Assembly (NCBI GenBank): GCA_000708835.1 | Contig: DF237241.1 | Coordinates: 1-64,000 of the forward strand | Source of the DNA: Klebsormidium nitens | Lineage: Eukaryota; Plantae; Klebsormidiophyceae | Length of the DNA stretch: 64,000 bases | Reading direction: 5' to 3' | In this document: positions 107-53,463 of the stretch, piece by piece | Layout: every line of letters begins with the position of its first letter | How positions within the stretch are numbered: the first letter of the stretch is position 1 | Notes under the pieces: model-generated | What the model saw: the letters and a program-made list of their open reading frames with translations, nothing else | Told to the model about the DNA's origin: nothing | Databases searched by the model: none | Position numbers and translations under genes: made by a program

Positions 107-3553
<3,447 letters not shown>

Positions 3554-9281: not shown

Positions 9282-11990
<2,709 letters not shown>

Positions 11991-30504: not shown

Positions 30505-33500
30505 CTAGTCGAGCAACGTGGGGCTGTCTGAGGAGTCCGGGTAGTTTGAGCGCGACCTGGTCGAGCGCCCCTCCTCCTTAAGCGTCTCCACTTCAAACGC
30601 CTCATCTATTGGGTCAAAGCCCCCTCCCTCAATCTCGGCCAACTTCTCGACCTCCGAGGACCCGACTTCGGACATTTCAGCAGTGATGTCCTCAAGATTG
30701 GACAGTTCCGCCAGCTGCTCCACAGGGTTTGGCGCAGAGAACATCGTCGAGATCTGGGGCATGGCGGCACGCAGCGGTGGCGCCATCGTAGGTGACCCGA
30801 AAGACAGAGACAGCCCGAGCATCGACGAGAGGAGCACAGAGGCGCCGGCCGCGTTCATGGCCTTCCTCGCGGTCTGCTCGGTCTCGGGGTCGGGGGTGAT
30901 TTCGTCATCGTCGTCAGAATCAACGTCCGCCTGCGCTTTGGCGTCGCCCTTTGCGTCCTTGTCCTGGATTGCGAGAAGGGAATGGTGTCAGGCAGTGAAG
31001 GGGTACATCGGTTGTTTAGACGGCTGAGTGTTCAGAGTTTCCTTCACATGGTTGTCAGAAACAATGGCCCACTGTATTCAGCATAGTACTCTCAGCAGAG
31101 CTTCTACTTGATCTCAAGAACTCTGGCCGTTGAGACCTCCTTCTCAGGGCTTGTAGCCAAGATTTCCTCAAAACCAAGGAAAGGAAGAGGATAACGAAAA
31201 GACAGAAAGAAGAACATTCATGAAAACGGCAGGGACTGAAGATGCAGATTGTCCGACTTCGTTCTCAAATACCCCAGATCCGAAAACAGGTGCTTTGGTG
31301 CAAGGAGACAAAAATGTGCCACGTGTCCTTTCTGTCGGGCACCCTCTCACCTTGCGCTGCACGGCCACCGTCAGGCTGGCAATCTTGGCGAGCTGCTTGC
31401 CGACGGACGGCTCGTCGTCGGAGTCAGAACCGTAACCGCGCCTGTCGTTGCCCGCCTGGACTGTGCGTGCATCGGCCAGCTGCTTGACCAGATAGGCGGC
31501 CTGTAGCAGGATGTATTCAGGTTGAGAAAAGACGTATGGTAGGTTTCGGGTCTGATTGCGAACTTCGTCTTTTACGATCAAAAAATGTCTGGACAACCAC
31601 CCATTCAATCATCCGCTCTTCTGCAGACGCCAACATATTGAACCCGACACTGCACTGTCTGCGAAACAATTTCGATTGCCAAGGAAACAGACTATCGTTG
31701 GGACGCTTTTCGTCGCTCGCCAAGACACCAATGATCTTTGCTGGTCTTCAGGAGGAGAACAACCAAGTTTCATTTGGAAAAACCAAACCCTTCATCGACA
31801 TCTCCCCTGATCGATGAATCCTCGGGGGAAGACGGGCACATAATCTTCAGAGAGGGACTTCAGCAGATGTCGCGGCCTCACCTCCTTCTGCATCTGCGCC
31901 AGCGACTGCGTCAGCTCGGCCAGCTCCTTCTCCTTGGTCTCGAGCAGCTCCGCGCGCTTTGACTTGGCGCGGTGCAGCGCCATGTTGTCCACCTTCAGGT
32001 TGAACAGCTGCAGCAAAAGACAAGCGTGCTCCGGTCAGCGCACACGTCACAGGGGGGGTGGAAAAGCAACAAGAAAAACCCCGTTAGAAACCGTATTCAA
32101 ATGCTGCATATTGGAAGGCTGGACAGCTGCAGCAGAAACAAAGAAGCTTGTTCCGGTCAGTACATGTATATTCGAGCGGCTGACGGAAGTAGTTGCGACA
32201 CTGCATTACAGTCACCAGAAACGTTGCAATCTAACGGAAGCATCGCAGTATGACTAAATCGTTGCAACTCTGAGATGACAATTGCGATTGAAGAGAAAGC
32301 GCTGCAATCAAGCAGCGTTGCATCCGACCAGCGACCAGAATATTACTGCAAACACGAAAAAGCGCTGCAAACCGAGTCGACTGACCTGTTTCTTGAGCTC
32401 CGTCTGGTCGCCGCGAAGGGAGCGCTCCTCGGTCTGGATGGCCCTCAGAACCCCCTCGAGGTAGCCTGCCTTGTCGGCCAGCTCGCCCTTGGAGGACATC
32501 ACCTCCTCCAGCTCCGTGGAGAGCTTCTCGCCCTGTCAGAAACGAACGGAAGAGCCGTTAGGGTCGTACGAAATTCAGCTTTCGAAGGCACAATTGCATA
32601 CACAAGCACCAATGTGGAGAAAGGCGCGCAAGGGTGTGAAAGATGAAGCAGCCTGAAAGACGACAGCAGTGGAACGCCTATATCTTCTTCTCTTTCTCTC
32701 TCGTTTTCACAAAACCGGACACGATCTGTCTGCACGTACGAGTGGTCGAACCAGTCCCAAAAACACAACGAATCTAAGGACGAACGAAAAGCAACCTCTG
32801 AGAGGACACAAGAATCCCGCAGCAAGGGGCAAACTCCGCTCGCTTACCTTCGCCTCAAGGTCCTGGACTCGGCCGTCGAGCATCGCCTTGGTTGCACGGA
32901 TGTGGCTCAGGTCCAGATCCTGTGACAAGACCCTGCTGCGGAACTCGCCGCCCTCGGCCTCGAGGCGCGCCACCTCGTCCTCCAGCCGCGAGATCAGCGA
33001 GAGCGCCTCCTGCAGGCTCTTCTCCTGCACGATCACACACAAAGAGTTCAGCTCTCGTGCGGTTACCTAACAGGTTAGGCTCTTGAACCACTGAGTCATG
33101 AAGGTGGATTCGGCTCAGAATAGTTGGGAGGTGAGATCTCAAACCACTGGTGTTTTACAGGGAGATCGGCGCTCAACAGCCGGGCCGATAGTGTGTAAGA
33201 GCAACGACGGGGAGTGGACAGAAGTGCTACGAGGGGCGACCTTGTGGTAAAAAGCGAAAGGTCAAGGCAAATTAATTCGAAGCCGACCGGATTCGAGTAC
33301 TTTGAAAGGCCAACAGCCAGCAACGGGCCAAGAACAGAAGTAGAAGCCTTTCGAAACGGTTCAAACGACTGTAATGTTGCATAAGAGAAAGATGAGGACA
33401 ACCAGGGCATGCAATGACAAACGCTTTCAGGAAGACGGCTCAAGGGGCACATACCGGCGCTTCTATCCCCTTAAAACGTTCCATGACAATGAAAAACCTG

Positions 33501-36500
33501 CAAGCACTCAATCCGCAGTGTGAAAGCTCACCTCCTGCTGCTGGACGGACTCCGAGAGCGAGACAAGCCCAGCCCACTGTTTCTCTGACTGGTTGGCAGA
33601 CTCTTGGTCGTCCATGGCCGTCTGCGCGTCCTCCCGCATGAGGGTAAGTTGGGCAATCTGCAAAAGAAAGACACCGGCTCCTGAGGATCTGCCTACTTTG
33701 CAATAATCAAGACTTGCTAAAGACGGCGTTGTTCTCCGGTGTCAAGGCTCAGTGAACGTCGTGTTGCTGGCAAGCAAGGACTGTCGGGGTCCGGAGCTGT
33801 GGCGATTTGAGAGAAATGCACGATTTCCCGGAAGGGAAGAACTTGATGACAGCTGGCAAGCTTACCTCGTTTTGCGCTGCCGCAAGCGCCTGCTCCACTT
33901 CTGCCAGCTCGCGCTCCTTGCTTGCGAGGATCTCTGAGCGCTTCACCTTGGTCCGGTTCATCGCAGAGTTGTCCATCTTCAGATTGAACACCTGCAGCAA
34001 CAAGAGTCCCAAGCAGCCGTTGAAAAACCGAGGCAAACCCAGAGTGACGCCCAAAAAAGCAGAAAGTCGGCAGACGTCCATAGAGCAATCAGGGGCAGAA
34101 CTCCGAACCAACTTTCGTATCGTTTAGCAAGCGAATGAGGGCCCAGGGAAGCATTCAACGCATCTGAGAGCCTTGCTGAGAGGTTCTTTGAACGGCTGAA
34201 ACTGGACTTCGCAAGGACCAAAGTGTTGCACACCATATTAGACCCTGGGCAAGAAACGCACGAGTACTTTCTGTGAACAGAGGTATTGGAGAAGTCCAGT
34301 GTCTTTGCAGTGAGGTTGTCACAGACAGCAAGGCGTACTTTTCCGCATGACAACCTGACAAGAGAAACAGGTTTTGATCGTTCCTTTAAGTTCCAACAGT
34401 GCACTGGTGTCGATCTCACCTGCCGCTTGAGCACGGACTGGTTCTGGCGAAGAGCGCGCTCCTCCTTCTGCGCGTCCTTCAGCGCAGTAGTGAGGGTCTC
34501 CACCTTCTCCTCCAGCTCACCCTTGGAAGTCAGGGCCTCCCCAAGAGCCGCCTGGAGCAGCTCACCCTGCAAGACAAAAAAAGAAGAGGCTTGGTTCCTA
34601 TTCCAGGACTTCACATGGTCCAGGGCCAAGGTGGAACTGTACACTGTTCGCTGCACATCAGCCACTGTCTTAAATCAAGAACTGGTAGCTTCCCAGTTCG
34701 TTAGGAATCCAGACAACAGGGTTGTTGTGGGCTTAACCTTACTTGTAAACCATATAGAAGCACAATCAGTACGTCAAGTGGAGGGTAGATGTAACAGGTT
34801 GGATGTTTTGAGCCATCTTCCTTAAGCACAAAATGTACTTGTGACTCAACAGCATGCGCAGTGGGACGGGTCAGCGTGCACCAATAACAATCTGATTCTA
34901 ACAGCACTGGGAACAAAACAACAAACTACACTCGTCAAGCAAAAAACAGAAGCCCCGAAGCCTGGGCTACGTAGCGGGATTCCCCCGCTCACCTGTGCCT
35001 CAAGAGATTCAACCCGGTCGCCCAGGATCGCCTTTGTTGCGTTGGCGTGGCACAGGTCGAACTCGTGGCGCAGGAGGTTGGTGCGCAGCATGTCCCGCTC
35101 CCTCTCGAGGCGCTCGCCGCCTGTCTCTAGCTGCTCGATCAGAGACAGTGCCTCTGACAGGCTCGTGTCCTGCAATATCAAACAGGACTTGAGCTGCCAG
35201 CGCAGGACCAACTTCGTGATTGACCAGCTAACCAAGGACTGTTTCCAGGACTGTTCTACACAGTCGGATCAAGGCCGTAGCAAATCATTTAGTGTGCAAC
35301 TGAGGTCGTCAAAACGAGCCCAGGCAAAGTTCTCAAAGAAGGAATGGATGGCAAACCGGCTATGGAGAATTTGCCATGCAGCCTGCTAACAAAGACATTG
35401 TACCGCGCGTAATTGACGACAAAAGTTGGAACACTGGGACATAGCAAGCACTACCTTTTATGACACAAGATCAAGACCTGTCAGAAAAAGTCTTGTGGCT
35501 TTGTTGCGCAACTTTAACTCTCGGCACTTCTTGAAAATTTGGAAACAAAAGAGTACGGCGAAACAAACATTTCCAGAAAAATCTGCAGCAGACGGAGAGT
35601 AAACAGCACCCGCTCACCCGAACTTGAGCAACCTCGTCGTACGACGCAATCATGCGCTCAAGGTCGTCGACCTTCTCGGCAAGGATCGACTTCGTGTGGC
35701 GCTCGTGGCCGAGGTCGAAGTCTGACTTCAGCATGTTGAACTGCAGAGCGCCGCCCTCTGCCCGCAGGCGCTCCAGCTCGCTGTTAGAAATCTCCGCCTC
35801 CGCGAGGGCTTCCTTCAGCTTCTCCAGCTGCGGGGTGGAAAGAGGATGGTCAATGCTCCAGGAAAACGCGTTTCCCAATCCTGAGATTGTCCCAGAACAG
35901 AGTTGACAATGGGCGGAATTCTTCATCACCACCTCACCACCACTGGCACCACCGACAGGGGCGGTCACGGCCTGCTTTCACGGCCACTCGAAAAACCTGG
36001 TCGACGCGAAAACGGGGATGCAAAACGTCACGAAGAGCAGATGGGAGCAGAGAAAGCGGCAGCAAAAGGACCTCGAAATAAGAGGGCATGATTCGTCCGG
36101 CAACTTGCAAAACCAGCGCAGCACTTGGTCTCTCACCCGCTCGCGTGCGGTCACATCCAGGTCTTCAACAGAGCGCTCGAGGAACAGCACTTTGTCGTCC
36201 AGGATCGCCTTCAGCGCTTGCGTGTGGGCCAGGTCGAAGTCCTTGCGCAGGAGCTGGGTCTGGAGCATGCCCTCCTTCGCCTCGAGCCAATCCACGTGAG
36301 ACTCCAGCTCAGTGTTGGCAGAGCGGGCAGCCTTCAGCTTTGCGCCCTGCAAGGTGGTAGAATATGACCGTGAGATTCGAAATTCAGGATGGAATTCGCA
36401 GTTTGAAACCCCCCGGACTTAGCATTTGGCACGGGGTTTAAATGACACTGCTGAGCATTGAGCTGATTCGGTTGTCTCTGCCATCCGTTTTGCGACCAGC

Positions 36501-39500
36501 CAGGCTCGTCAACTCCGTAGGAAAAAGAGCCTCCTTAAACCAAAGTGTGCCAAAACACTCCCAAGTCTGTCAGACCTTCCTGACAAGAACGAATCAACAC
36601 TCGGATCAACATAAAAACAATGTTCAGATGAACATATTGCTTCTCCGACCCACTAAGCGGCAAACCCGTTGAACTCACCAGGTCGTCGTGAGCGGCGATG
36701 ACGCGCTCCAGATCCTCCACCTTGTCGTGCAGGATCGACTTCAGAGAGCGGGTGTTGGTCAGGTCGAAGTCCTGCAGCAGCAGCTTGGTCTTGAGGTCGC
36801 CGCCCTCCGCCTCGAGGCGCGCAACACGGGCTTCCAGCTGGGCCTCCGAGTCGTAGGCCGCCTTCAGCTTAGTGCCCTGCAAAGGGAGGTCACAAACATA
36901 AATGAAAGTGCAAGCCGCTGAGAAAGCGAACAAAAGGATAACACGGATGAGACCACTCAAGTTCAAGGGACTCAGGTTGTGATTGATCGCAGTGCTTGCT
37001 GCTTCCGAACACAATCTCAAAAGCACTGTGCGAGAAAGATTGTCTGAGAGACAAAGAACCTGCGGCACTTTCCATGTGCTGTCGGGCGCGGTTTCGACTG
37101 TGTGGGCTGGACAGAACCCGGCAAGCTTCTCAGCGTAAGGCAAGACGAAACAAGAAGTATCAGTATATTGTTCAAACGAAGTCGCACTTACCAGGTCGTC
37201 GTGGGCCGCAATCACGCGCTCCAGGTCTTGCACCTTGTCATCCAGCATCGCCTTCATGGCCTCAGTGTGGGTCAGGTCGAAGTCTTTGAACAACAGCTGC
37301 GTCTGGAGATCCCCTTTCTCCGACGCAATCTGCTCCACCTCGGCCTGCAGCACGGCGTTCGCCTGCTGGACCTCCGCCAGCTTCTCGACCTGCACAACGT
37401 TTTAACCTGTCTCAGGAGACAGAAAAGGGCAGCGGACAACGTTTTTGACTATCTGAAGTGCCAGAAAGGTGCAGCGTACGCCGTTTTGGACTGTCTCAGG
37501 TGCCAGGACCGTGAAGCGGCCAATCGTGTGTGCAAGGCAACGTGATTGGAATCCGGCCCAGACTTCCAAAGGTACCGAGTAGATTGCTCAAGTGAACGGA
37601 CGTGAACGCAGTCTGTTTAAGCCTTACTATATTCCGAAGCCAGGGATACAAACTCTTTCGATCGAGAAAGTGAGCAAAACGGTTTCCCTTCCATCAGACA
37701 CAGAGCCGAACAAGGTCGATTCAAGGGCAGAAGCAACAGTGTCTTGCCTCCAGAACAGACACTCTTCTAAACTCACCATCTCGTCGTGGGCAGCGATCAC
37801 GCGCTCCAGGTCGTTGACCTTGTCGTCCAGGATGGCCTTCAGCGCGCGCATGTGGCTCAGGTCAAAGTCCTTCGAGAGCGCTTGGGTGCGGTAGAAGTTC
37901 CCCTCCTCCCCGAGGCGCTCCACCTCAGCGACCAGCTCGGCGTTTGTGGACTGCGAAGCCCTCAGTTGTGTGCCCTGCATTTGAGAATACCCTGTTAGCC
38001 AGGAGCTCTTTGCAAGTGAATAAGGTTGCAAAGACAGCTTACAGATGGTGACCGCCAGTTTCGAACCGTGAGAAAGTCAATACGGACCCGATGAGCTCCA
38101 AAAGCCGAGGGCACACAATCGTGCAACATACTCCTTCCAACAAGACACCCAGACGCGCTTTTCTGATATGCTACACACCAGGCCGGCCAGCAACGGCTCA
38201 ATCTATGAGACACCTTTCCCAGCACTCACCAGGTCGTCGTGGTCTGCGATTGTGCGCTCCAGGTCCTCCACCTTCTGGTTCAGGATGCTCTTCATGGCGT
38301 GAATGTGCGTGATGTCGAAGTCCTTGCTCAGCAGCTTGGTCTGCATCGTGCTGCGCTCCGCCTCCAGGTGCGCCACCTGAGCGTTCAGCTCCTCCATGGT
38401 GTAGTTGGCGGCCTTCAGCTGCGCGGTCTGCACAAGGTTCATGACAGGGTTAGGAAACCGGTCTGTTTTCGCCCTGCGCATCTTCAACTGCTTTCTAATT
38501 ACAGGAAAGAGAGTGCCTTATAGTCGTAGCGCCTGGAAGCAGCGCTCTCTTTCTCGACCAGACAACAACCGGGCGAACACCAGGCACTAGGAGACACTGA
38601 CCTGCAAGAAGCACAGGTCAACAAGGGAACAGCTGGAGACAAACCCCGAACTCACCATGTCGTCATGCTCCGCAATGACTTTCTCGAGGTCGGCGCACCG
38701 CTCGGCGAAGATGGCCTTCATTGCACGCGTGTGCGTCAGGTCGAAGTCCTGGCGCAGCATCTGGGTCCTGAGACTGTCGCCCTCCTCCTTGAGGTTCCCA
38801 ACCTCGGCTTGGAGCTCCGCGTTGGAAGAGTAGGCAGCGCGCAGCTTCGCACCCTGCACGTGCAACGACATTGATTCAATTGACATCCGGAACTGTTGGC
38901 TAGATCGGAGCTCTTGGTTGAGCGCGCAGCCACACTACCTGAACGAGCATCTTGAAGTTGCGGACAGCAGACTGGAAACAAAGAATTCGACTTAGCGTCT
39001 CCGAGAGCAATTTGATTAGTTGCGAATCTTTCTTAGGTGGTCGAACCGGAACTGCCCGAATCAGAACACTTGATCAAGTCCGTTTCAGTATCCAGAACCA
39101 ATGCTTGATGAAATCAGCCCAGATCACTACGGCTTGCAGCTAACAACGTTCGTTTCTTCAGTGTAACTGTACTTGCAGACCAACTTACCAGGTCCTCGTG
39201 AGCCTCAATCGCGCGCTCCAGGTCTTGCACGCGTTCGCCCAGCATTCCCTTCAGAGCGTCGGCGTGGGTGAGGTCAAAGTCCTTCATCAGCACTTGGGTG
39301 CGGAGGGAGCCTCCCTCCTTCACAAGGTGCTCCATCTCCGCTTCCAGCTCAGCGTTCGTAGAAAGGGCGGCCTTCAGCTTCGCGCCCTGCAAGTTGATAG
39401 ATACGGTTTAGTCAAAGAGGGTTTGACGCCTGATTGGGGTGCTCCAACAGATCGCTAGGAGCACAATCAACAGTCAGGAGGGAAACGCAAACACAAGCTT

Positions 39501-42500
39501 GGTTCATATCTTGTCAGAGACTCTTCTGTTGTCCTTTCAGCGTTGGCCAGGGTCATCTTAGCCTACATCAGGCCAAGAATCAACGGATTCTGTATTCATG
39601 ACCAGTGGAATCTGATGCATGACATGCCACAACGTAGGGGCAGAATCACAAAGCCACTGCAAATCCAACACCAATCTGCTGCACCTGAACTGCTACAAAG
39701 CGTCCAGTCTGCACATCCTGGCACTCACGGCATCGTCATGTTCTGCAATTGTGCGCTCGAGGTCGTCCACCCTCTCATCGAGGAGCCTCTTCAGGGCGAC
39801 AGCATGGGCGATGTCGAAATCCCGGCGCAGGAGTTGAGTCCTGAACTCGTCTCCCTCCTCCATCATGCGCACCGCTTCAGCCTCTAGGGTGATGTTGGAG
39901 GCAAGGGCAGCTGCCAGCTTCTCATCCTGCATGTGGGCAAGACTTCCTTTCAGAACGTTTCGTTGCAACACTTGGCAAGTGATTGGGATCGAAAGCAAAG
40001 TTGTCAGCATGGTCTATTAGAAGAAGAGCGAAGTCTGAATGAAACAGCTGAGCAGAGTCAAACCCTTCTCAATCCTCGTGACTCTCCGAAAGCAACAACA
40101 ATCAAAACCACGTACCAGAAACTCTTGGGATAAGTACGAAAAAATCTCCGTTTACTCCCACTTACCCGTGCCTGAGACCTCTGGGCGTCAGCCTGGATCA
40201 GGCGCTCAAGGTCGTCCACCCTCTCCCCATAGACCCTCCTCCCTGCGCTCACATGCGCCAGATCGAGGCTCAAGCACAGCACCTTCTCCTTGAGAGCGGT
40301 CCCCTCTTCTTGCACTATCGCCATGCCAGCCTCCAGCACAGCGTTGGCCTCGGAGGCATCCGCAAGGGCGGTCTTCAGCATCTCGTCCTGCAGCGTGGTA
40401 AAACAAACTGAGAACTCGCTTCTTTCTCGCGTTTGCCTTTTTCTTTAACCTTGTTAGACAGGGTGACAACCCATGGCGGATTGTCAAGCCGTTGCTCCAA
40501 AACTCGCATTTTCTTTGGATGTCCTCACATTTTCTTTGGACATCCATGACAGGAAAGGTCAAGAGCATTCCACATCTCTCAAAAGGGGAAGCAGCTAAAG
40601 ACAGGGAAGAAAAAAAGATGTACTCGATCTGCTTACCTCCAAACGAGTTGCCCCGAGCTCCCGCTCAAGGTCGTCGACCTGGGCCCCAAGAATCTGCTTC
40701 GTCGCACGCGTGTGGGACAAGTCCATGTCCAAGCGCAGAACCTGCATCCGGAGAGCGGACGCCTCCTCGTTCAGGCGGTCATACTCTGCGATTGCCGCGG
40801 ACGACTCTTCGAGGGCGGCCTTCATCGTTGCAGCCTGCGAGCAAAAGGTGAAGATTGAAGCTCAGAACTTGATGCACAACAGTTTATTGGAAGTCCAAGT
40901 ATCAAACGGCTCCCTTAAAAAAGCACTGGATGGCCTGACAACAGTCTTGAAAGATTGAATCGTTGGCAAAACTGCAGTGTTTGGTATCCGTTTTGAAGTT
41001 TCTACAGAAGCGTAGCACAGCAGCTGGTGATGCTGCTGTCTCAAAATGAGTGAGACGCCCATTGAAGGACACAGGCACAAAGAGAAACGGCCGGAATTCG
41101 ATCATCAAAAATGGAACCGAAACCAACTCAGGTCCGAAACCAAGCAGGACTAGGTCAGCAGGAGCCAAGGAAGCGGTGGCTCAGAAGGTTTTTCTCTCAC
41201 CCGTTCCTGGGCCGTCTCCTCGTAAGCCGCCACAGTGCGCTCCAGTTCTTGCACCTGCTCCTCGAAAATCTTCCTCATGGCCTTGGAGTGAGTCAAGTCG
41301 AGGCTGAAGTTCATGACATTGCCCCTCAGATTCGACTGCTCCTCCTGCAGGGCTGCCACCTGCGCCTCCAGCTCAGCGTTGGCGGCGTTGGCCTTCGCAT
41401 ACGCGGCCTTCAGGGTTTCCTCCTGCAGGATTGTGCAAGAGATTGAGATGCAGATTTGTGGTCAAATTTGAGTTCTGCTCGCGACTTATCAATGTAAGGG
41501 TTGCGCGCTCAACCAGGGGGTTTGCAAGCAAGATAGAAAAAACCTGCCTGTGTGTTGGTTTCCGACCGTTGCTCAAATGTTACCAATGGATGGATGACTG
41601 GACGCGAGAAACCGATTGCGAAGATAAGATAACTGTTAGCAGGGCAGCCATTTTTCTCCCCAGCCAATCCACGGGCGCTTTGCTCGAGTCTGATGGTCAC
41701 ACAAGTGCTCTGATAAAAGTAAAAGACACACAGAAAAGAAAGTCGGAGTAAGGTACAACCCAATCTGTCTCTTCAAGTCAGAATGCTGCTGTAAGGACGC
41801 TGTATTGTGTTTGGTTGGTGAGCAACAGGAACCTGCCTCTTCACAGCATTGACCAACCTTGTAAATTCTGTAGACCTATCAGACAAAAGGTAACAACGAT
41901 CCTAACTCAACGCACTAAAAACCCTTCCAGGATGCCAAAAAAGGTTTCGTTCTCTCACCTCCTCGCGCAGTGTGTCCATGGCCTTTTCGAAATCATCCAC
42001 TCTCGCACTGAGTAACGCCTTGGTTGCACTGGCATGGGTGAGGTCAAAGTCCTTGCACAGGAGGCTGCTCCTCAGAGCGCTGGTCTCCGCAGTCAGGCGC
42101 TCTAGTTCACCAATGGCTGCTTCTGCCTCCACCAGGGCAGTTGCAACCATCTCCTCCTGCACAACGACGAAAGGAACGAAGTCTGAGCAAAATACTCAAT
42201 GATTGAAACCAGGCTCTGGACGTTGAGCTCGGCCTTCAGTACCAGACAAGCGTCTCAACCAGTTTGGTCCCTTTTCAGGGGTCTGACAGAGCAAAAGTGG
42301 CTTGTAGTGACTCCCCAACCAACCAAACAGATCGAGACTGGTTCTGCTTGCGGTTACTTTTTCCTTGTACGAATCAAAAGCACCTTCAAGATATACATTG
42401 TTCCAGATTACATAATTTACAAAACTATAATGAAGAACTGACCAGGGTTACAGAACACAAAACATCAATCCCAATTCTGTCAAACTTTCCAAGGCAAAGT

Positions 42501-45500
42501 CAGGCCATTCAATCTGTTGAATATTCACTGAGCACTGTAGACAGCAAGGCAAGGCAACTGCATCCAGTTCAAAGAAGCAGTAGGCAGAAACTGCAAATCA
42601 ATCAGCTGCATCAAGCACAAGAAAATCAACACAAGAACGAATCTGAGAGAGGGGCCAGCAACACCAAGCTGGCAACGAAAGGAGAAGGCTCTCACCCGTG
42701 CGCGGGAGGTCTCGGCATCGGCAGCCAGCACGCGCTCGAGGTCATCAACCTTGCTGTCAAGAATCTTCTTCCCGTGAGCGACATGCGCCAAGTCCATGCT
42801 CAGGTTCAGGGCCTTGGTCCTCAGTTCGGTTCCCTCCGACTGCGCCGCTTCCAGCTCAGCCTTCATAATGGCATTGGAAGAGGTTGCCTCCTCAAGGGCA
42901 GTCCTCAACTTCTCATCCTGCACGTGAGGCAAGGACAAGGGCATTTAGAAGCTGATCAGAAATGCAAGTAAGGGTCATGTTTGCACTCGAGCTCCACTTC
43001 CACAGGGGCAAATTGGCTGTCAACCCAAACTGGTTAAACTCCAAGTCATTGCCCTTTATCAAAGGCAGAAAAAACAACGTCATCGTCCTCTTGCTAATTT
43101 CTCTTCCGACTTTCTGCATATGAACACCAATTCAACAGCAAATGCAAGAATTTCCTTCAGAAGTTCAATCTGCAGAGATGCAAGATTCGACCAAATACAG
43201 GGTTGTCCTGGATTGCACAAGCCTATGTGGTCCTGAGAACAACTAATTGCATTTGGGGCACTCCACTCTCCAGATTGCAAGCTCCAGCAGCAATATGCCA
43301 CAAAAGGACACTGGAAATTAAAAAGGTAGAAGCGACCAAGCAAGGATTCGCTCCTCACCCGCACTCTAGATGCTTCGGTATCTGCTGCAAGTGCACGCTC
43401 AAGGTCGTCCACCTTCTCGTCGAGGATTCCCCTTGTCGTGCGCGCATGGACCAGGTCGAAATCCAGGCGCAGCAGCTTCTCCCGGAGATTGCTTGTCTCT
43501 GACTCCAGGCGGTCCACGTGCACTGCCAGCTGAGCGACGGACGAGGATGCGTCCGCCAGAGCACTCCGCAGCTTCTCATTCTGCAAAATGCAGCAAAAAC
43601 AAGTGATGAGTCAAAGCTCTTTCCAGACACCTGCTGACCAAGGTTAAGACGTCCTGAACTGAGAGCTAGACAGATTCCCACGTAAGACTGTAACTGATGA
43701 AACCAAGCATATCGGATGTTCCATCTCTCCTTGTTCAGCAGCTTGATCAAAGAGATGCAGAACAGCAAATGGCACCAATTTGGACGTTCACAAACGCCCT
43801 TCCTGCGGCCTGCATGAAGTGTCATCCACATTACCAAGCGTGCATGCTACTGGCCTTGAAAAGGGCTGGTTCTATGCACGAGTCGCATCTTTCTAGGGAA
43901 ACCTGGATTCTAAGCGTAATAATCAGGCTTAGGAGTAAGATGGCCCTACAATGCAGCACAAGGGGTGAAATCCAGCGAATTTTACTGGCTTTGAGCTGGA
44001 GTACGCAGCAGAAAAGTGGAAAAATGCGTGGCTGCTAAGGAGGGAGACGGTATCCAACTCGATAAAACTCTCGGGCCCCAGCAAAGCCCAAGATTATAGC
44101 AGAACCTAACTAGAACCTGACTGCCGTCTCTTTCCCTCAAAAAGACACGCAGTGCAAAACAACCCTGTCATCATCAATGACATGTCACTTGGTAATGACC
44201 GAGGGCTCACCACAGAAGAGAAACAGGAGGAGAGACAACCATGGCAGATTCACGCAGAAACATCTGTTAGAAACCCTCAGAAGCCGTATGGAGGAACCAG
44301 AAAAGAATGGGAACAAGGAGAAGTGCTCTTACATCGTCCGTGCGGGTCTCCATCACACGATGCAGGTACTGCACTTGGTCCTCAAAGATTGCCTTGCCTG
44401 CGCGGGCATTGGCAAGGTCCAAGTCCAGGCGCAAGAGCTTGAGCTGGAGGTCCGCAACCATCTCTGACGCCTCATGCGTCGACTCCTCTGGTTCGCGGGC
44501 CTGCGGGTACGAAGTGCAAAGGAAAAGCTTAGACAGCTGACCCAAATGCCTGCATCTTCCAGGATTGAGATTCAGGTCCCTGACATCGGGCTAGCATCTG
44601 CCGTGCATGCTTGCAAGTCAAACATAGGGAGCCCTGGCCCACACTCAAAAATGGGTCTCTGTAGGCAAAGGAACCCTTTGAAAGGGCACTTTGAAACGAC
44701 CTCAAATGACATGTAGGTCTGTCCTGAAGTGCAGTCAAACCTGCCAATCAAACCAGTCCAGGCTGAGACAAGAATCAGGAAAGATTCAATGCTGCCCGAA
44801 ACTTGGGATGGCTTCACATGGGAACAGTCTGGGCAGGAAGCACCTCAATCTGCTGCACACGGATTGGATAATTGAATTGTCGAGGCTCGACTGTTGCATG
44901 ATAAAGCTCCTACTGGACGCAGCAACCCTATCGAGAGTGAAGCGTCTGAACCTCTGTCAGGCGATGTTATGGCACTACTGATTGAGCCCCAGTCAGTCCA
45001 CCAGTCAGTCCAACATTCAAATGGTCCAACATTCCAACTGCAGGCTTGGGAAACTTTCAGGTCCTCTGCATTGGAATCGTGCCCCAGAACGGTCTGCCTT
45101 AGGCCAGCTCAATCAAGGAGAACGAGAAGACAAATGGGGCCCACAGCCTGCTCCCTCCTCGACACTTCTCTGCACAATCTCTCAGGCATACGGCAATTCT
45201 GTGAGATTTATTAGCCGGTGATTACCAAACAACATTGCTAGCATTTCTGGAAGAGCCTCTTATATCAGCAGCGTTTGAGGGCACCCAAGAATGTCAGGGT
45301 TGGTTAAAGACATGTCTCTCAGAACCATGTCTCTCAGAACCTCTGCGCCAATCTGATCAGAATTCATCAAAATCAACTCCCTGCAAATCAAAGCAATTGA
45401 AACTAAGGTGCTTGAGATTATACAGACTATGCGCCCACTCACCTGGTATGTAGGCTCGACATATGTAGGCTTAACGTATGTAGGCTCAACCTGGGGAATG

Positions 45501-47408
45501 ATGATGTCATCCTTCTCCTCCACAGCAGGGGCCGCGCTGAAGCTTGCAGAGTATGCGGGGGCCTCCACATGGGCAGGCTCCTTTGGCAGTGTATAGCTGC
45601 ATATTGGCAAGTGGTAACCATTATACTGTATGAAGGACTCGAGACTGTATGAAAGATTCGAGACCCTCCAAGAAGTCTGGAGTGCATGGACGGAGGCCCT
45701 TGCCTGTAAGACAAGTCCATCCAATCCTTGCATGGAGGTGCCCCTTCTTGGCAATCCACCATTTGGACCCTGCCAAGCATTGTCACTACAACAGTAGCAG
45801 GGTTGAGACAACCCAGTTGCAGGCTGTTTCCATGTCAGCTTCGACTTTGGAGGAACCCGAAAAATAAGGTCCAAGAATTGTGTCTCAACTGCATAGAAGC
45901 CCTGTACTTATTTGCCCACCCGGCTAATCCTTCCTTCCTTACCAGAAACTCAACTTCTTGGGGCTGCAGTGCCATGGATACATCTATCCAAGTAGTACCA
46001 ATACCCAATGGATCTCTCAGACTGGAGAATAGCCCAAAACCTGGACTGACCAGTCCCAAAGCTCTTCACAAGGTACTGACTCAAATCAGTCGGCTTTCTG
46101 GCTACTGTCCCTACTGGAGAAGAGCATGATGTCAACAAACTTCAACCCAAGAATCCAGAAATGATCGAGCAAAGATGGTCTCCTCCGCTGCCAACCCTGA
46201 TAACAGGCCCAGAAGAGCGTAATCTGTTGACCGCAAAAAAGCCGAAGGGGACACACAGACTCATCAACCTCATAGGTCCATATAATGTCACAAGACCAGC
46301 AGGTTGACGAAAAGAAGTTGGTGGAGAAGACTGCTTGTGGGATATCACTGCTCTTGATCCAATAACCCTGGCTGTCAACCTGCACAAGACCCCCTGCATG
46401 TCTCCTTCTAGAAGCAACCATCCACGTTCGGAACAGTACCGGCCATACAGCCAGTTCTTTTCCCTCTGGTCTGACACTTCAGGGTCTGCCCATCCAACAA
46501 TCTAAGTAAAAATTTCCCTGAGGTCAAACAGCTTCCAAATCTGAAGAAGAGGCTTGACACAAAAGCCCCTTGAGCACTTGCTTTTTGGACCAGAAGCTCC
46601 CTCACCTGTTGTCAGCCTCTGGCAGCTGGAAACTCTGCGCAACAGCTCCGTTCTGGTGTCCATTGTTGTCCTGGACATCATTCGTCCATGCCCCATCAGC
46701 AGCAGGCTCATCTGGCATCCTCTCCACGACAGCCACAGCATTGCACGCCCGGCAACGGGTCTGAACCCCATCCTTTGTTTTCTTGTTGGGTGCAAAGTCA
46801 CGCAACTCCTTGACGACTCTGCACTTTGAGCATTGCTTGGCGTGTGCCCAGGCCTCGTCCACCGACATGGACAAGTGGTACATATCCTTCCCAGAGCGGT
46901 CAGCAAGGCTAACTGCCACACACGCCCTGCACGAAGCCCTCAGCCCCTTCCCAGCCTTCTGGAAGTCAATCAAAGGCTTGACCCGGTGGCAAGCTATGCA
47001 AGTCTTCCCCTCCACATCAATCGAAACCCCTGCGGAATGGCTCTGAACTGTCACATGCTCCGCGTCTCCCGTCCCAACCGCCACGGCTCTGCTAGTTGTT
47101 GTGCGCATACTCCGCGAGTGACTCGATCCATGGGGCACCTCCCTAGAGCGTGAGATGTGAGCCCCCTTCTGCTCGCGCCCTGCGCTTGCACTGGCCTTCA
47201 CCCTAATGCGACTGCCAACCAGCGCTTGCTCTGAACTCTTCAAGTGAAAGTCCAAAGCACCTGCCAAAAACGTCTTTGTGAAATCAGTTAGAGGAAGATG
47301 GACAAAAGGTCTAGTAGATGCTGCATTCCCCCTGGCTGCGGACGCCCCGAACTTGGATGTGCAGGGCTTGGTCGCGGCACTGGTCTGCAGCTGGACAGAG
47401 GCCGCCAT
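30505..47408 (-). CDS. Uncharacterised giant (~1949 aa) putatively plastid-targeted protein: transit-peptide-like N-terminus, two CxxC-CxxC zinc fingers, ~1430-aa exon-repeat coiled coil, acidic tail with hydrophobic segment; 27 exons
   Basis: Exons (minus) 47408-46606, 45596-45443, 44500-44333, 43580-43359, 42917-42696, 42156-41959, 41422-41201, 40834-40637, 40387-40166, 39926-39729, 39386-39189, 38853-38656, 38427-38230, 37974-37777, 37389-37192, 36876-36679, 36346-36137, 35827-35618, 35169-34993, 34566-34420, 33991-33866, 33657-33532, 33024-32848, 32532-32386, 32007-31882, 31500-31351, 30963-30505 total 5850 nt. Every exon has a canonical CAG acceptor and GT donor, and the joined frame is open. 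The exon1-exon2 join is the least certain. Confidence 0.8.
32848..44500 (-). repeat. Array of 18 paralogous coding exons (56-74 aa each), consensus ..KL.AA...NAELEA.V..L..EG..LRT.LL..DFDL.H..A.KAIL.EKV.DLER.IA.HD.
   Basis: Manual alignment of the translations of exons 3-19 and 23. Nine exons are exactly 198 nt, four are 222 nt, two are 210 nt, two are 177 nt and one is 168 nt. The introns between them show no obvious similarity. Confidence 0.9.
37395..37520. repeat. 42-bp tandem repeat x3 (degenerate) abutting the 3' splice site of exon 15 of the giant gene
   Basis: Units 37395-37436 CAACGTTTTAACCTGTCTCAGGAGACAGAAAAGGGCAGCGGA, 37437-37478 CAACGTTTTTGACTATCTGAAGTGCCAGAAAGGTGCAGCGTA, 37479-37520 CGCCGTTTTGGACTGTCTCAGGTGCCAGGACCGTGAAGCGGC. 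Confidence 0.75.
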
Positions 47409-47479: not shown

Positions 47480-47903
47480 CACAAAAATCCCTAGGCCTTT
47501 GTATGTACAAGTTAGTAAACAAGCGTCTCCTCCATGAAAAAGCGCCTTGGTCCTGGATAGAATTTGCTCTTCCTTGTCCACTTTCAAATTCCAGTTCTGT
47601 CACGTAGGCATCTAGACTACGGTCTATCTTTTCCATGAGAATTCGGAGCCAGCGACAAGTGTGGGGCTGTGGCTGGTACGCAACCTGATCTGTTCAATTT
47701 TATCTCGTAGGTACAATGCATGGTTAAGAAGGGCGTTGGGTTTTGAGGAACCCACGTGGGACGTTGCGGCGTCCGTGATGGGGCAAAATATACCTTCAAA
47801 GTCGCTGCAAATTCTAGCACGTGCGGATCGCGGCGACGGAAACAGTTGCACTCTATGGTTACTGGTCGCTATATGCAGATGCATCGGTATGCCCTCTTTA
47901 ATG

Positions 47904-48173
47904 CCGTACCGCCAAGGGAATTCGCCACCTTTTGGTGCGAAAAGTCAATTTCGTTCGTTTTGAGGTTTCACCCGTGTACTTTGAGAGTTTATTTTACATT
48001 TCGCACAAAGCATTTTTTCGCTTTCTTTTGCCCCACAAAACAGGACTTTTCACCATTTTGAGGTAATTCTTTAGTTTCGCCTTTTCGCAGTTAGGGTCCC
48101 ATTTACATACTTTCTAATTCTTCGCACCGACCCCAAAATATTTATTTTCAGGCGATTTCCCTTGGCGGTACGG
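47904..48173. mobile_element. Candidate MITE (270 bp, 23-bp terminal inverted repeats)
   Basis: Left CCGTACCGCCAAGGGAATTCGCC (47904-47926) and right GGCGATTTCCCTTGGCGGTACGG (48151-48173) are reverse complements with one mismatch. There is a subterminal IR GGTGCGAA/TTCGCACC, a T-rich non-coding interior and TG on both flanks. Confidence 0.55.
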
Positions 48174-49264
48174 TGCATGTGATCATCATTGATGCGCAGG
48201 CCGCCACGCTGGGGACAATTGTGGGCCGCGGAACTTCGCAAAATTGGAAGACAATTTTAAACTTTCCAAGATTTTCATGTGGGCTGCGACGTCACTTTGC
48301 GAACTTAGGACTAGATTTTGAAAACCACTTTTTGGACCGTCCGAGTGGATGATTGTAGATAGTCAGAAGCCAGACTGATTGAACGTCCGAAACCCCACCA
48401 CATGACGTCACGGGATCACGGTCAAGTCCAGACCGGCAAGCGCGCGGCCGCGCCGAGCCCAGTGGTCAAACGTACTGCTGGCACTGAGTGACTCCGATCG
48501 TGCCAGATCGGATCGGACCGTCTTGTGGTCTTGAACCACCACCGGGCAGTATAAATACCTAGTGCTGGTTACCAGCTTTGCCATATTATCATCTGTGGCA
48601 CTTGAAATTTTGCGACGGGCGCATTGCCATTAGGCCGTTAGTAGCCTCGAAGGCCGCCTGAGTCCCCGGCCGCCCGGCCTGGCAGGGCCGGGCGGCGGCG
48701 GCGCAACAAGAGGCCCCGGTAATTGCCAGGCTCGCCGCCGGTGGCGAACTTTCATTTGGGATCGTTTAGAGCAATTTTTGCAACCGTGAATGACCACAAT
48801 CAGATCTGCCCGGCCGGAGTTAACCGAGAACACTGCTACTACGTCAGCCAGCCGCGCATGTAGCTGCCAGTACGCCCGCAAGAAATGCCTTGGGCGCTCA
48901 TGATGTTATGTGCCACCGTCTTGATTCTCAACTTCTACGTACCCTAACCAAAATAGACTTAAGTTCAACATCTCATTATAGTAGCCGTGCGTTGCAATCC
49001 CGACAATATCACATGATCTTACATGCATAAGCTTCAGAGACAGGGCAAGTGGCCATGCAAGGGTCATTGCAAGTTGAAAACATGCCACGACATGGTTGTT
49101 GTTGCTAATCAAAACAACTTTAGGCGTCGTTTCATAAAGGTGCATTTATGTTTGTTGCGGCAATATCTCCTTTTGGGCTACTACTCTTCAACGTAAGGCT
49201 GTTGCTTCGGTAAAGAGGAATCTCATCGAGCTGAATTGCCGGCCTGCCTAGAAAGACGACTTTA

Positions 49265-52200
49265 TCAGGCGTCCTTGTCCTTCCCTTTTGAACCTTTGTC
49301 TTCCTTCACTTCTTCGTAAGCATTTGTAACTGGGTTCAAGTAGTACCTGCAAATACAAGTCGTGAACCAGCATCAGCGTTCTCGAAGTTATGCTTTCCAA
49401 TCCTCAGACCTCAAGGTTGCAACAAAAAATAACCGCTTAACCCCAAAGCATCAAAGAGTGTATAGTACTCTGGATTCGTTTCACAGTGTCACCTTCCACA
49501 CCGAACTTGTCGTTCACTATGGGCACACGGTCACTTTCACTTACCATTGTTGAGTGCTAGCGCTGCAGTACAGCCCTGAGCCCGGATCGTAGTAGTAGCC
49601 CTGTTCACTATTGTAGTAGAACCTGCACAGAACTCAATTGCCTGAGGAAAAAGGCTGTGGCGGCTTTCCTAGAGGCTTTGCTCGGGGTTTCAACACAAGG
49701 CAGTACTCATCGGCCGAGCAGCCCATTCCAAACAAGCTAGCCAGAGGTGCTCGTAAGTGCTTTCGAATCTCTAGTTGGTCCATGCATGAAGCGGAGATGC
49801 AGTGGACAAGCGCGGAGGCTATACGTCTCTTGAATCACAAGCGGTTCAACATGGATTCCCGAACGGATCCAATGCATGCAATCGCTTGATTTCAGCCGAT
49901 CTTTGAAAAGGACGATGCCTATACTGAAGAACGTTATCGACGCTATCAGACACAATGGTTTTCAAAGCTTCTGGATGTACTGACGGCGAAGACCTGGTAT
50001 GAACTCACGGCAGGGCGAAGACTGCAACCTTATTAAATCGCTGAAGGGGTCTTCATCCTTCCGATAAAACTTGACGTACGATCCATCGATCAAAAGGAAA
50101 CTTCAGAAATTTTGCAGACCAACAGCCGTACAACATGCACTTCTCGGACACCGAGGCTTGCGAGATCTGACGACCTTCAACACGAGGTACTTTGAAAGGA
50201 CACGGACAAAGGGGAGGACGATATGAAGGCCACGGTTTGGTTTGACCCCGCAGACCGCTCACCCGGAAGTCTCGTCATAGACGAATCCAGAAGCTTCGGT
50301 CGGGATACCCCCCTCTGCCCCTCTGTTAGACGCGCCCCCGTTTGCAGAGGGCCCTGCCTTTTCCCTCCCGAGAGCGGGTGCAGCGTCATCATCCGCAAAC
50401 ATGTCGTCATCCTCCGTTGTTGCAGCAGCTGCCTGGGCGCGCAGCCGGTGGATCGCCTCGTAACCCTCTGCTTCCCGCAGAAACGTCTCCTTCTTGTCCG
50501 AGTAAACGTCTGGACAGAGATTTCCAGCGTTCAAAATTTCCACGACATCTGAATCCGAGTCGGCCGTCGTTAACGCAATTTAAGGCGCCCAAAATACAGA
50601 CCAGTGCAGACTGGGCAATAAGAAAGGGTGCAAAAGAGAACGAAGAGCTACCACAAGTCAAAGTGTGTCTTTTCCTAAGAATTACGGCTTAAATCGCAGT
50701 CCACAAAGAATGCAAGCCACAAGATTGTACTGGCTGCTGAAACATGCGCACACGCCCATACCATCTTGCCCTTCACGAGATAGTAGGGTGCCAGATTGCG
50801 CCAGGGCGCAGATCAAATCTAGAAAGAGGACAATGAGCAGCCAAACTGCGGGACAGCGTAAGTAACCACGGAATGAAAGAAGGTCGCAGATACGACTCAA
50901 AGCGAAAAACCTGAACGGCCGATTCCGGGCTATCTTTTAAGGAAAGCGAGAGCAGGAACCAAAGGGGAAAGCCTAGATTGAGACATCAGAATAATCATAA
51001 GGGTATCTTTCCACCTTGACTTCCAGAGAGAAACGACGTTGGCCACGAACACGAGCCTTTTCGACTCTCTGGAACGTTCTGAAAGAGCTCATCAGGACAG
51101 AAATGCATGCGGACCTGGTTCGGACTACTCACTGTATTCCCCTGCCTCCATTAGCCGGCTCGCGTCCTCCGTCAAGGCATCGAACTGCCTCTTCTCCTCA
51201 TCGCTCATCTTCTTCTCTTCTACCACGGGCACCCCCGGTGGTCCCCGCCCCCTCCCCCGACCGCCCGGCTTACTTCCGCTTTGCCCCCTTCCCGCACCCC
51301 CCAAGCGCCTCAGCCCCTGGAGCACAGTCTCCCCGTTCTGAAGCGAGTCTGCGATTCGCCGTTTGATGGCGGCCATCTCGCCCGTAGACATTTCCTCCTC
51401 GACACTGTCGGCTGCGGCCTGCTCCTCAGCCGCGCGCTTGGCCAGGCTCGGGTCCACCTTCACGCCCTCCAGCCAGGCGTCCTGCAACAGATGTTTGCGC
51501 CTCAGACATTGACCGATCATCTCCAATCTGTACCAGAATACAAAAGGTGAAGCAAGGCGAGTGCGAGTGCTGGCGAGTTGTGTTGCTGATTCAGAGCAGC
51601 CAGCGCAGCAGCCCCGCACAGGGCTTCGTTCGCTCATCAAGGAACATTTGAACGTGGAGTGAGCTCCTTGTGGCAGAGTGTTTCGACTTTACCCAGATGG
51701 TCAGACGATTCAGCTTTGTGTAAACCCCGTCCTGCGGCCAAATATCCCGCTCACCCGTGCATCGTTCTCCTGGCGGTATTCGACATAGTTGCCCTCGGCG
51801 TCGAAGTAGCCGTCCTCCCGCTCCTTCTTGAGATTGAAGGGCTCCAGCTTTGTCCCCTCGTCGTCCCGCACCAGGCCGTGCTCGTCATCATAGTCCTGAA
51901 CCAGAAGGTAGAGAGTTGACCGGCTCTGCTTAGAAAAGCTACAGAGTTCGCTCATACCTTTTGAGGTTGTTGGGAAACAGAAAAGGATAGGTTGTCGAGG
52001 AACAAAAGAGGATAACCTAAGCCAAAGTACAAACACTTGAGGATTGTGCATGGCCCACATGAAGCACTGTCAACAACGGGGGAACTTTCATGCACCTGGG
52101 GATGAACACCTCAAGACTGAGAAGAACCGTGTCACTGGATTCTTCTTGCAGAAGTCAGGACACCATACAGTATCATGCATGAGGAACATCTGAGTACCAA

Positions 52201-52911
52201 CTTCTCCCTTACTCAAGGCATACCACCGATTGCAGATACAAGAGTCAGTGAGATTGAGCTCAGAAAAAGTCCAGGATGGCCAATGTAACAAGAAGCCCAG
52301 CTTATCGGCAAGCCGAGACATCGCAAGTATAGTGATCAGACTTACCTCATAATCTTCCTCTGCCCCTCCGACATTGGTTCCGACATCTGTATCCTCTTTT
52401 AGTTTGTTCTTGCCCTTCTCCTTCCTTTTCACCGCTCGCTCCGTTGCAACAGCCCTCGCATCCGCGGCAATTATAGGCCCTCCTGCCTCATCCAATTCCA
52501 CTGCTTCCTCCTGAGCCTTCTTGCTTTTTGGGAAGCGCACCTTCTTGGCCCTGTTCCAGTAGCACGGGCCTAAGTCTTTGCTGACAGCATTGATTGAGCG
52601 ATTCTCGAACTCTTGAATCCTTGCAGAGACGAAATTGACGTAAGCTTGTCCTCTCCAACCAATCGAAGATGACTGTGCATTGGTTTCAAATCTCGCGAAA
52701 ATCCTGCATTATATTCAAAGTTACCAACAGAACACAGGAAAGAGTGGACTAATGCCTGGATAATTCATGCACCACGTCGCTCTACAAAGGCTAGGAGAGC
52801 TGCAGGCAAAGAGGCTCACTTCTGATCTTCTGCAGCGTCCTCATCGTCACCTTCATCACCCCCAAAGCGCTCCCGCCTCCGCTTGAGTATTTTGCCATCG
52901 GCGTCCGTCAT
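49265..52911 (-). CDS. CD2BP2: CD2 antigen cytoplasmic tail-binding protein 2 / Lin1 (U5 snRNP 52K) homologue with C-terminal OCRE-like aromatic repeat, 7 exons, ~397 aa
   Basis: Exons 52911-52820, 52550-52346, 51895-51755, 51481-51133, 50509-50263, 49622-49545, 49346-49265 total 1194 nt. Motifs: LEPFNLKKEREDGYFDAEGNYV, DAWL, GETVLQGLRRLG, LTEDASRLM and GFVYDETSGFYYNSEQGYYYDPGSGLY. Confidence 0.88.
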
Positions 52912-53463
52912 TGCTCCGCTTACTGATTGTCCAACTCGTCCTTGAACGTTTCACAACCAGTGCCTCTAAGTCTTCTACCACAGGACTCGTTGCAACCATG
53001 ATGATGATCGCCTCTCCTTTATTGTTGTGTTGCACTTGAAGTTGCAGCTGCGAAGTACCTACCACAGGCTTAAATTCAGGCCTGTGCCAGAAATTAAGCT
53101 TAAATAATAAATTGCACAATCGCAGGGTAAATATTTGCAGCTCATGCATGTACCGTAGATCGATTCACGGGTTTCCTTTTGAGCTTTGTAATTTTTTCCT
53201 TAAGCAGATATCTACGTAATTGCTTGGTTTCTTTGGCCTGGGCCCGAAGGGTTGTGAACTTGTCATACCTATTTGAAAATTTTCAAGTTTCATCCGCTTA
53301 TATATGTAGCAGATGAATATGTTAGAAATTACACCGAGCAAGTGAATTCTTTCCGCTTCAACCTCAACCCCAGCTGTGAGGTCCAGCTGAAGCACTGCCA
53401 GCATTGCAGAACGCCAGCTTGTGAGGACCGCATGTGGTTTGCGGCCTGGCCTTTCTGAGGAGC

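Follow-up and report, generated by a model that had tools for sequence, protein, structure and literature searches.

A lineage-restricted giant coiled-coil protein of Klebsormidium nitens with a Stc1-like zinc-finger head and an anchor-like tail: a candidate tether or scaffold

The first 64,000 nt of contig DF237241.1 from the streptophyte alga Klebsormidium nitens (the whole stretch analysed, hereafter the window, in whose coordinates positions are given below) carry on the minus strand a gene of 27 exons that is predicted to encode a protein of 1,949 aa. On balance we favour the reading that this protein is a lineage-restricted, membrane-anchored, rod-like tether or scaffold built as one polypeptide. 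In the proposed mechanism its helices would pair in parallel to form a coiled coil of about 215-220 nm, a hydrophobic segment would anchor one end of the rod in a membrane, a zinc-finger head at the far end would hold a partner, and the protein would thereby act as a spacer or scaffold of defined length. What is new here is the sequence family and the combination of domains; membrane-anchored tethers or scaffolds made of a long coiled coil are already known as a kind of protein.

Exons were built from minus-strand stop-to-stop open frames that were joined at GT-AG sites on the block edges. The resulting open reading frame (ORF; 47408-30505, 5,850 nt) begins with an ATG at 47408, ends with a stop codon at 30507-30505 and contains no internal stop, an independent reconstruction that agrees with the single continuous spliced frame over 27 exons claimed in a preliminary description of this DNA. 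The linker motif that the same description had reported, VEPTYVKPTYVEPTY, is likewise present in exon 2. All introns are GT-AG and lie in phase 0, save intron 1 (phase 2). Position weight matrices (PWMs), trained on these same sites, gave the 24-25 clear sites scores of 6.6-13.7 for donors and 8.5-21.5 for acceptors. An exact look-up of the exon 1 product returned no matching record.

An ortholog was found on a 33-kb Logan contig from SRR23617307, which is syntenic with the window, the upstream basic leucine zipper (bZIP) gene included, and whose exon 1 product is 76% identical. Blocks of similarity between the two loci coincide with the exons of the model, with DNA identity of ~70-88% in exons and ~40-63% in introns. 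The 27 exons of the two loci correspond one to one, the repeat exons 3-19 are equal in length, and AG and GT flank each projected boundary that was inspected, the sole shift being exon 26, whose donor lies 6 nt further downstream. Projected on the ortholog, the model gives an intact ORF of 1,941 aa, in which exon 1 keeps its ATG and donor and carries in-frame indels. Exon 1 measures 803 nt in the window and 797 nt in the ortholog, exon 2 measures 154 and 142 nt respectively, and the frame into exon 3 is restored in both. The ratio of nonsynonymous to synonymous substitution rates (dN/dS) is 0.29 over 1,862 codons, with values of 0.26 in exon 1 and 0.50 in exon 2. A pseudogene, a transposon or a non-coding tandem repeat was rejected in view of the two intact orthologous ORFs, the conserved splice sites and this ratio. 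Exon 25 (31882-32007) is the only exon with a dN/dS above 0.6 (2.11; dN 0.183, dS 0.087); as it offers 42 codons, the excess over 1 is probably small-sample noise.

A more distant relative lies on a 146-kb Joint Genome Institute (JGI) metagenome contig (IMG 3300060285). When JGI metagenome contigs were scanned twice, with the finger protein and with the finger alignment, no locus was confirmed, and this contig was reached otherwise. The finger exon of the distant species is ~40% identical and likewise ends in phase 2 at a GT. Its linker exon ends with DEDIIIPDVAPAPSDPIYQ directly before GT, has a phase-compatible acceptor and is followed by an exon-3-like exon and then by ~21 repeats, all on one strand. 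The end of exon 2, DIIIP...YQ followed by GT, is conserved in all three species, as is the order of the parts, from zinc-finger exon through linker exon and repeat array to hydrophobic tail. Because the ortholog ORF is intact with its splice sites kept, and the distant species shows the same order and, at exons 1-3, the same intron-phase logic, exons 1-27 very probably form a single gene.

The same data bear on whether there are instead two adjacent genes, a 268-aa zinc-finger protein ending at TGA 46604-46602 and a separate coiled-coil gene downstream. The exon 1 frame, if unspliced, does meet a stop codon 1 nt into the intron; however, this stop overlaps a strong donor (CAG then GTGAGG, PWM score 12.3) that occurs in the same phase in all three species. 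Two genes would also fit with the acceptor of exon 2 being the weakest site of the model (6.3), with introns 1 and 2 being the longest in the gene (1,009 and 942 nt) and slightly better conserved between window and ortholog than the remaining introns, with the occurrence of paralogous finger genes that have no adjacent coiled coil, and with the exon joins being known from genomic DNA alone. Against this, the lengths of exons 1 and 2 vary between species whilst the frame into exon 3 is always restored, and the DIIIP..YQ end of exon 2 is kept in front of its GT. Moreover, order, strand and spacing persist even at ~40% identity, and the frame of exon 3 can be extended upstream without encountering an ATG, the first Met after exon 1 lying inside exon 3. 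We consider two adjacent genes very improbable.

The bulk of the protein is a repeat array. Exons 3-19 and exon 23 each encode one copy of a unit of 66 or 74 aa, 18 in all, with 29-58% identity to a reference copy and the consensus ..LRTxLLxxDFDLxHxxAxKxILxxxVxDLERxIAAHDD, and exons 19-22 and 23-26 constitute a duplicated (paralogous) four-exon module. The proline-free helical region, previously put at ~1430 aa, is present, its measured length being 1,454 aa (residues 324-1777). Given the 18 copies as an alignment, AlphaFold2 (AF2) modelled one repeat as a single unbroken 64-residue helix with a predicted local distance difference test (pLDDT) score of 96.6. A Viterbi assignment of the heptad register over residues 320-1797 (1,478 aa) placed hydrophobic residues at 71-73% of a/d positions and scored 233.9 versus 112.3 +/- 7.0 in shuffles (~17 standard deviations above), with 13 register breaks versus 36.7 in shuffles. 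In exons 5-10, which alternate between 74 and 66 aa, a pair amounts to 140 residues, exactly 20 heptads, and 413 residues pass without a register break; along the run of 66-aa exons the register shifts about once per repeat, in the manner of a stutter. The rod is also very acidic, with a net charge of -105. These features are strong evidence for a continuous alpha-helical heptad coiled coil, as predicted from the sequence. A spectrin-like helical bundle was considered and is not favoured, since a single repeat is modelled as an unbroken helix and the heptads continue across repeat borders.

At the coiled-coil rise of 0.1485 nm per residue, the extended rod would measure ~216 nm for the 1,454 proline-free residues or ~219 nm for residues 320-1797, so that the earlier estimate of ~210 nm is close to the computed 215-220 nm, provided that the helices pair throughout. 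The proteins of window and ortholog share 74% identity; 10 indels separate them, all outside the 1,478-aa rod. Were indels evenly spread, the chance of this would be about 0.242^10, or ~7e-7. Least conserved are the linker (51% identity) and the tail (57%). Conserved ends joined to a rod of conserved length are the pattern expected of a tether or spacer.

At one of these ends, the acidic tail with a hydrophobic stretch that had been described before was found to contain a hydrophobic segment at aa 1835-1853 of 1,949, the only one in the protein. Mean Kyte-Doolittle hydropathy in a 19-residue window (KD19), for which the customary transmembrane threshold is ~1.6, reaches 1.48 in K. nitens and 1.55 in the ortholog, and its value of 2.10 for the distant species is clearly of transmembrane strength. 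The segment occupies the same position in all three, being identical in the ortholog and different in sequence but more hydrophobic in the distant species, a pattern that points to selection for a hydrophobic sequence of the kind seen in transmembrane helices. Identity to the ortholog is 90% over residues 1830-1860 and 57% over the tail as a whole. The segment is followed by ~96 aa in K. nitens and ~300 aa in the distant species, and by an NPVEQ motif that has been multiplied into PVEQ repeats in the latter. An alternative is that the hydrophobic stretch is not a membrane anchor and that the protein is a soluble former of filaments or lattices, in the manner of intermediate filaments or striated fibres. 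A Ser/Gly-rich segment with a KD19 of only 1.48-1.55 in the two close species would suit such a protein, and the stutters every 66 aa and the 140-aa super-repeats resemble filament-forming coiled coils. However, no part of the tail is better conserved than the hydrophobic segment (90% vs 57%), and the distant species keeps a different, more hydrophobic sequence (KD19 2.10) at the same place. We regard a soluble filament as quite improbable.

At the other end of the predicted tether lie two four-Cys fingers, as had been claimed, located at C137/140/160/163 and C193/196/219/222, and all eight cysteines are invariant in the three species. The finger module is basic (net +7) and, at 87% identity to the ortholog, among the best-conserved parts of the protein. 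Its top Pfam family is Stc1 (PF12898) in all three species; relative to the gathering score of 24.8 bits, K. nitens (29.0 and 28.7 bits) and the ortholog (26.4) score above and the distant species (22.1 and 19.1) below. The match of each finger is confined, in two species, to the second half of the Stc1 profile, whilst the 22.1-bit match of the distant species spans the whole profile. Fission yeast Stc1 is a small nuclear adaptor of RNA interference (RNAi) and heterochromatin, which binds Argonaute and couples RNAi to heterochromatin, and its tandem finger is a LIM-like protein-binding module. The K. nitens head resembles Stc1 (PDB 2luy) in having two consecutive Cys4 fingers with the spacing C-x2-C-x19-22-C-x2-C. 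In contrast, yeast Stc1 is not known to have a coiled coil, a membrane segment or a presequence, all three of which are predicted in the K. nitens protein.

The AF2 model of the finger module has a mean pLDDT of 63.9, with two beta-hairpin-plus-helix units at ~75-78. Foldseek searches of the PDB with this model gave no match at E <= 1e-3; the top matches, all non-significant, were Hpy99I (E 0.0098), Stc1 2luy (third, E 0.054; probability 0.54 and template modelling score 0.28-0.33, from a model of pLDDT 63.9), PacI and short SBP/SPL finger matches. A PDB sequence search with the module found nothing significant. SBP (PF03110) scored 14.8-18.5 bits, below its 27-bit gathering score, and its Foldseek matches were local (28-32 residues, E > 2); moreover, no DNA-binding family passed its Pfam threshold with the finger module. 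The head is thus best described as a putative tandem Cys4 Stc1-like module. By analogy with Stc1/LIM-type fingers, its partner is more likely to be a protein than DNA, though the net charge of +7 leaves room for nucleic acid.

A profile search with the finger module detected paralogs with 3-4 tandem C-x2-C...C-x2-C fingers in the genomes of both the ortholog and the distant homolog. Those at L009:2029-2502 and L010:4656-5479 are 40-43% identical, with Stc1 scores of 13.8-24.1 bits, below the cut-off, and no coiled-coil repeat was seen in the flanking sequence examined around the finger paralogs. Therefore, the head belongs to a small family of fingers and came to be fused with the rod. A separate observation concerns the second finger, which in the strain of SRR14092358 is split by a ~246-nt GTGAGT...CAG intron (L002:1276-1522). 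The intron is absent from the 93-95%-identical JGI contig (L008:7080-7115), its removal restores K-E-I-R-D-F-A exactly, and no other copy of the insert was found among the loci examined. From these sequences we read the insert as a presence/absence polymorphism of a spliceosomal intron, by recent gain or precise loss.

Where in the cell such a tether would act is suggested by the N-terminus, which is A/S/T-rich as previously noted. Its first 80 aa contain 40% A/S/T, carry a net charge of +6 and have their first acidic residue at position 42. V-x-A-type motifs are present as RVKA followed by S in K. nitens and as VRA followed by T in the distant species. The motifs FGASAA and DF(T/S)K(T/S)FL are conserved in this region in all three species, which would be unusual for a pure transit peptide. 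No N-terminal signal peptide was found in the exon 1 translation. Because the composition is transit-peptide-like, the plastid is the likeliest single guess at a location, and a tentative one.

A non-organellar tether of the cytoplasm, endomembranes or nuclear envelope, golgin-like and with an N-terminus that is simply disordered, is an alternative with the same architecture. Golgins (giantin, CASP, golgin-84) and nuclear-envelope linkers possess rods of hundreds of nm, a membrane segment on the C-terminal side and a binding head at the far end, and a coiled-coil rod with a C-terminal anchor is their classic design; the K. nitens rod likewise has its membrane-like segment toward the C-terminus and a binding-type head at the far end. 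Furthermore, conserved motifs within the first 70 aa favour a role that goes beyond import, and fungal Stc1-type fingers act in the nucleus or cytoplasm. However, the protein has no signal peptide, its N-terminal composition resembles an organellar presequence, and its anchor is not tail-anchor-like, with the 96 aa that follow in K. nitens (~300 in the distant species) to be set against a tail-anchor criterion of ~30-40 aa. Pfam scans, which covered 10 exons and left out exons 5-10, 12-14, 16-18 and 23-26, gave no match to golgin, GRIP, KASH or SUN families. A location outside the organelles seems to us unlikely.

The preliminary description had gone further and proposed a plastid protein that grips nucleoid DNA with its fingers and is anchored C-terminally in thylakoid or envelope, thereby tethering plastid DNA as a reversed MFP1. 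The acid-poor, A/S/T-rich N-terminus with its V-x-A-type motifs and the basic finger module (net +7) are consistent with this, as is a weak local likeness to zinc modules of DNA-binding proteins and DNA enzymes (SBP at a sub-threshold 18.5 bits; Hpy99I, PacI, SPL). However, the sole family above threshold is Stc1, a protein-binding finger, no DNA-binding family passes, and the structural matches are weak and mixed (Hpy99I, Stc1, SBP fingers), so that the claim of nucleoid DNA binding by the fingers is not borne out. The conservation of N-terminal motifs across ~40%-identical species is unusual for a pure transit peptide, and the net charge of -105 disfavours a rod lying along DNA. Membrane-anchored plastid coiled-coil proteins do exist, e.g. 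MFP1, but MFP1 itself is now linked to starch granule initiation and not to nucleoid anchoring (PMC10801857). We judge a nucleoid tether improbable.

As to the likeness with MFP1 itself, that protein has an N-terminal transit peptide, a twin-arginine translocation (Tat) signal and a transmembrane segment, with its coiled coil C-terminal (PMC10801857). The analogy holds for the anchor-plus-rod architecture, in that both are long coiled-coil proteins with a single membrane anchor, MFP1 itself being plastidial (PMC10801857). It breaks down over the position of the anchor, which in K. nitens would lie at the opposite end, near the C-terminus (aa 1835-1853), and over sequence, as the repeat has no land-plant match and the repeat profile (not a pairwise comparison) revealed no relationship to MFP1. 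Moreover, no Tat-type signal was seen in the K. nitens protein, and zinc fingers are absent from the MFP1 domain scheme in PMC10801857.

The preliminary description had also offered a plastid- or pyrenoid-scale scaffold as a possibility, which the observations favour neither way. Other large plastid coiled-coil proteins are SAGA1 and SAGA2 of the Chlamydomonas pyrenoid starch sheath and MRC/PII1 of Arabidopsis (PMC6744930, PMC10801857), which the K. nitens protein resembles in joining a large coiled coil to a small binding module at one end. SAGA1-type proteins need a carbohydrate-binding module (CBM) and Rubisco-binding motifs (PMC6744930). In contrast, the repeat-profile search showed no similarity to any of these proteins, and no starch-binding CBM (CBM20) was matched in the 10 exons scanned. 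The Chlamydomonas-type Rubisco-binding motif, [D/N]W[R/K]xx[L/I/V/A], is absent at 4 of 4 Trp residues (187, 241, 1285 and 1583, in EAWAHA, GAWTND, VDWLEA and KQWAGL respectively). A more specific proposal is that of a plastid-imported ruler of ~200 nm, standing on the thylakoid or inner envelope and spacing finger-bound nucleoid, pyrenoid or starch-initiation machinery from the membrane. We hold this to be rather unlikely; if true, the ruler would be an element of plastid architecture of one streptophyte algal clade, without a counterpart in land plants or chlorophytes.

Returning to the membrane-anchored tether or scaffold that we favour, several points weigh against it. The joins between exons 1, 2 and 3 derive from comparative genomics, and the exon 2 acceptor is the model's weakest. 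The AF2 helix model is of one repeat as a monomer. Membership of the head in the Stc1 family is borderline, and so is the K. nitens hydrophobic segment as an anchor, with its KD19 of 1.48 and its Ser/Gly-rich sequence. Lastly, the rod of the distant species is ~1,645 aa long, a rough figure as automatic exon-boundary picking mis-set several boundaries, so that length is not fixed over deeper time.

The exon structure also shows how the rod arose, namely by tandem duplication of phase-0 exons, each encoding one 66/74-aa repeat. Reciprocal best matches between the repeats of K. nitens and those of the distant species are collinear, and therefore the array predates the split of these lineages. 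The C-terminal module is single copy in the distant species (two in K. nitens). Several further duplications were observed in the distant species: a recent four-exon block (L008:11206-14417 vs L008:15249-17636) with near-identical peptides, in-exon partial duplications, by which some exons reach 97 aa through additional units of ~15 aa, and a duplicate of 21 aa, or three heptads, that takes in a donor site (~20055-20127 on L008).

When 1.84 billion representative proteins were searched with a profile built from the 18 repeats, 44 matches resulted. The shorter ones are nearly all single-exon ORFs of 63-194 aa from unannotated assemblies, the exception being one match of 298 aa (E 9.3e-4), and these short ORFs come from the contig of the ortholog or of the distant species, or else from additional relatives (~55-86% identity). 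Four long matches were rejected as spurious, namely cyanobacterial CHAT/TPR proteins that share only ..DNLEKAIAAY.. and a pig 'restin homolog' that is a generic coiled coil. No annotated or transcript-derived multi-repeat protein was found in this library (the 298-aa match being left unread), and no land-plant protein at E <= 1e-3. A repeat-profile search of PDB sequences likewise found no relative, and Pfam searches with single repeat and tail exons returned sub-threshold generic coiled-coil families only. The earlier statement that the repeat belongs to no characterised family accords with this outcome, in which the hidden Markov model search recovered the repeat only as unannotated exon ORFs in a few related algae. 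Within the reach of these searches, the family is confined to a handful of related algae.

No group is closer to land plants than the streptophyte algae, and little is known of what gives their often elaborate plastids and cells their internal form. The family described here is well defined, conserved and absent from the annotated proteomes searched, and combines a rare finger module, a length-constrained rod of ~220 nm and an anchor-like segment, which makes it a clear object for localisation and knockout studies. It is also a clean example of a giant coiled coil growing by exon duplication with heptad phase kept. For annotation, it is a case in which protein databases hold single-exon ORF fragments as the sole traces of a gene. 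Table 1 lists the features of the gene together with its neighbours.

Table 1. Parts of the 27-exon gene and neighbouring genes in the K. nitens window.
Feature	Position	Strand	Description
Exon 1	46606..47408	-	aa 1-267 plus 2 nt; presequence-like N-terminus and both zinc fingers; phase-2 end
N-terminal ~130 aa	47019..47408	-	A/S/T/R-rich, few acidic residues; from composition and three-species alignment
Zinc finger 1	46920..47000	-	C137-x2-C140-x19-C160-x2-C163; from Cys positions, Pfam Stc1 and AF2
Zinc finger 2	46743..46832	-	C193-x2-C196-x22-C219-x2-C222; best Stc1 stretch, profile positions 51-83
Exon 2	45443..45596	-	Pro/Tyr-rich linker SYTLPKEP...DDIIIPQVEPTYVKPTYVEPTYQ; frame passes from phase 2 to phase 0
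Exons 3-19	34993..44500	-	17 consecutive 66/74-aa repeat copies, one per exon; flanking introns phase 0
Exons 19-22	33532..35169	-	First copy of four-exon C-terminal module, 59+49+42+42 aa
Exons 23-26	31351..33024	-	Second copy of four-exon module, 59+49+42+50 aa; exon 23 is repeat copy 18
Exon 27	30505..30963	-	aa 1798-1949 plus stop; acidic tail, hydrophobic segment, NPVEQ motif
Transmembrane-like segment AAGASVLLSSMLGLSLSFG	30796..30852	-	aa 1835-1853; from Kyte-Doolittle and three-species comparison
AAA-ATPase fragment	2118-2594	+	Neighbouring gene
Mitogen-activated protein (MAP) kinase	9719-11990	-	Exon 9722-10456: best named matches Closterium 87%, Chara 85%, then Riccia, Selaginella
Family-2 glycosyltransferase fragment	21275-21754	+	Neighbouring gene
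bZIP transcription factor	56926-57735	-	Syntenic in ortholog contig

The window has ~52% GC and short GT-AG introns. The neighbouring AAA-ATPase, MAP kinase, glycosyltransferase and bZIP genes have no evident functional link to the rod gene. Within intron 2, the 300 nt upstream of exon 3 (44501-44799, minus strand) share 70-74% identity with the ortholog and include a core that is nearly identical, ..TTGACTTGCAAGCATGC..GGCAGATGCTAGCC.., and their indels are not multiples of three; the element was not found in the distant species. This conserved stretch may be an intronic regulatory element. Lastly, the gap between the rod gene and the upstream bZIP gene (47900-56800) spans ~9 kb in the window versus ~3.1 kb in the ortholog contig. 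The extra sequence, which holds minus-strand ORFs at 51125-51640 and 52088-52540 without a Pfam match, may be an inserted gene or mobile element.

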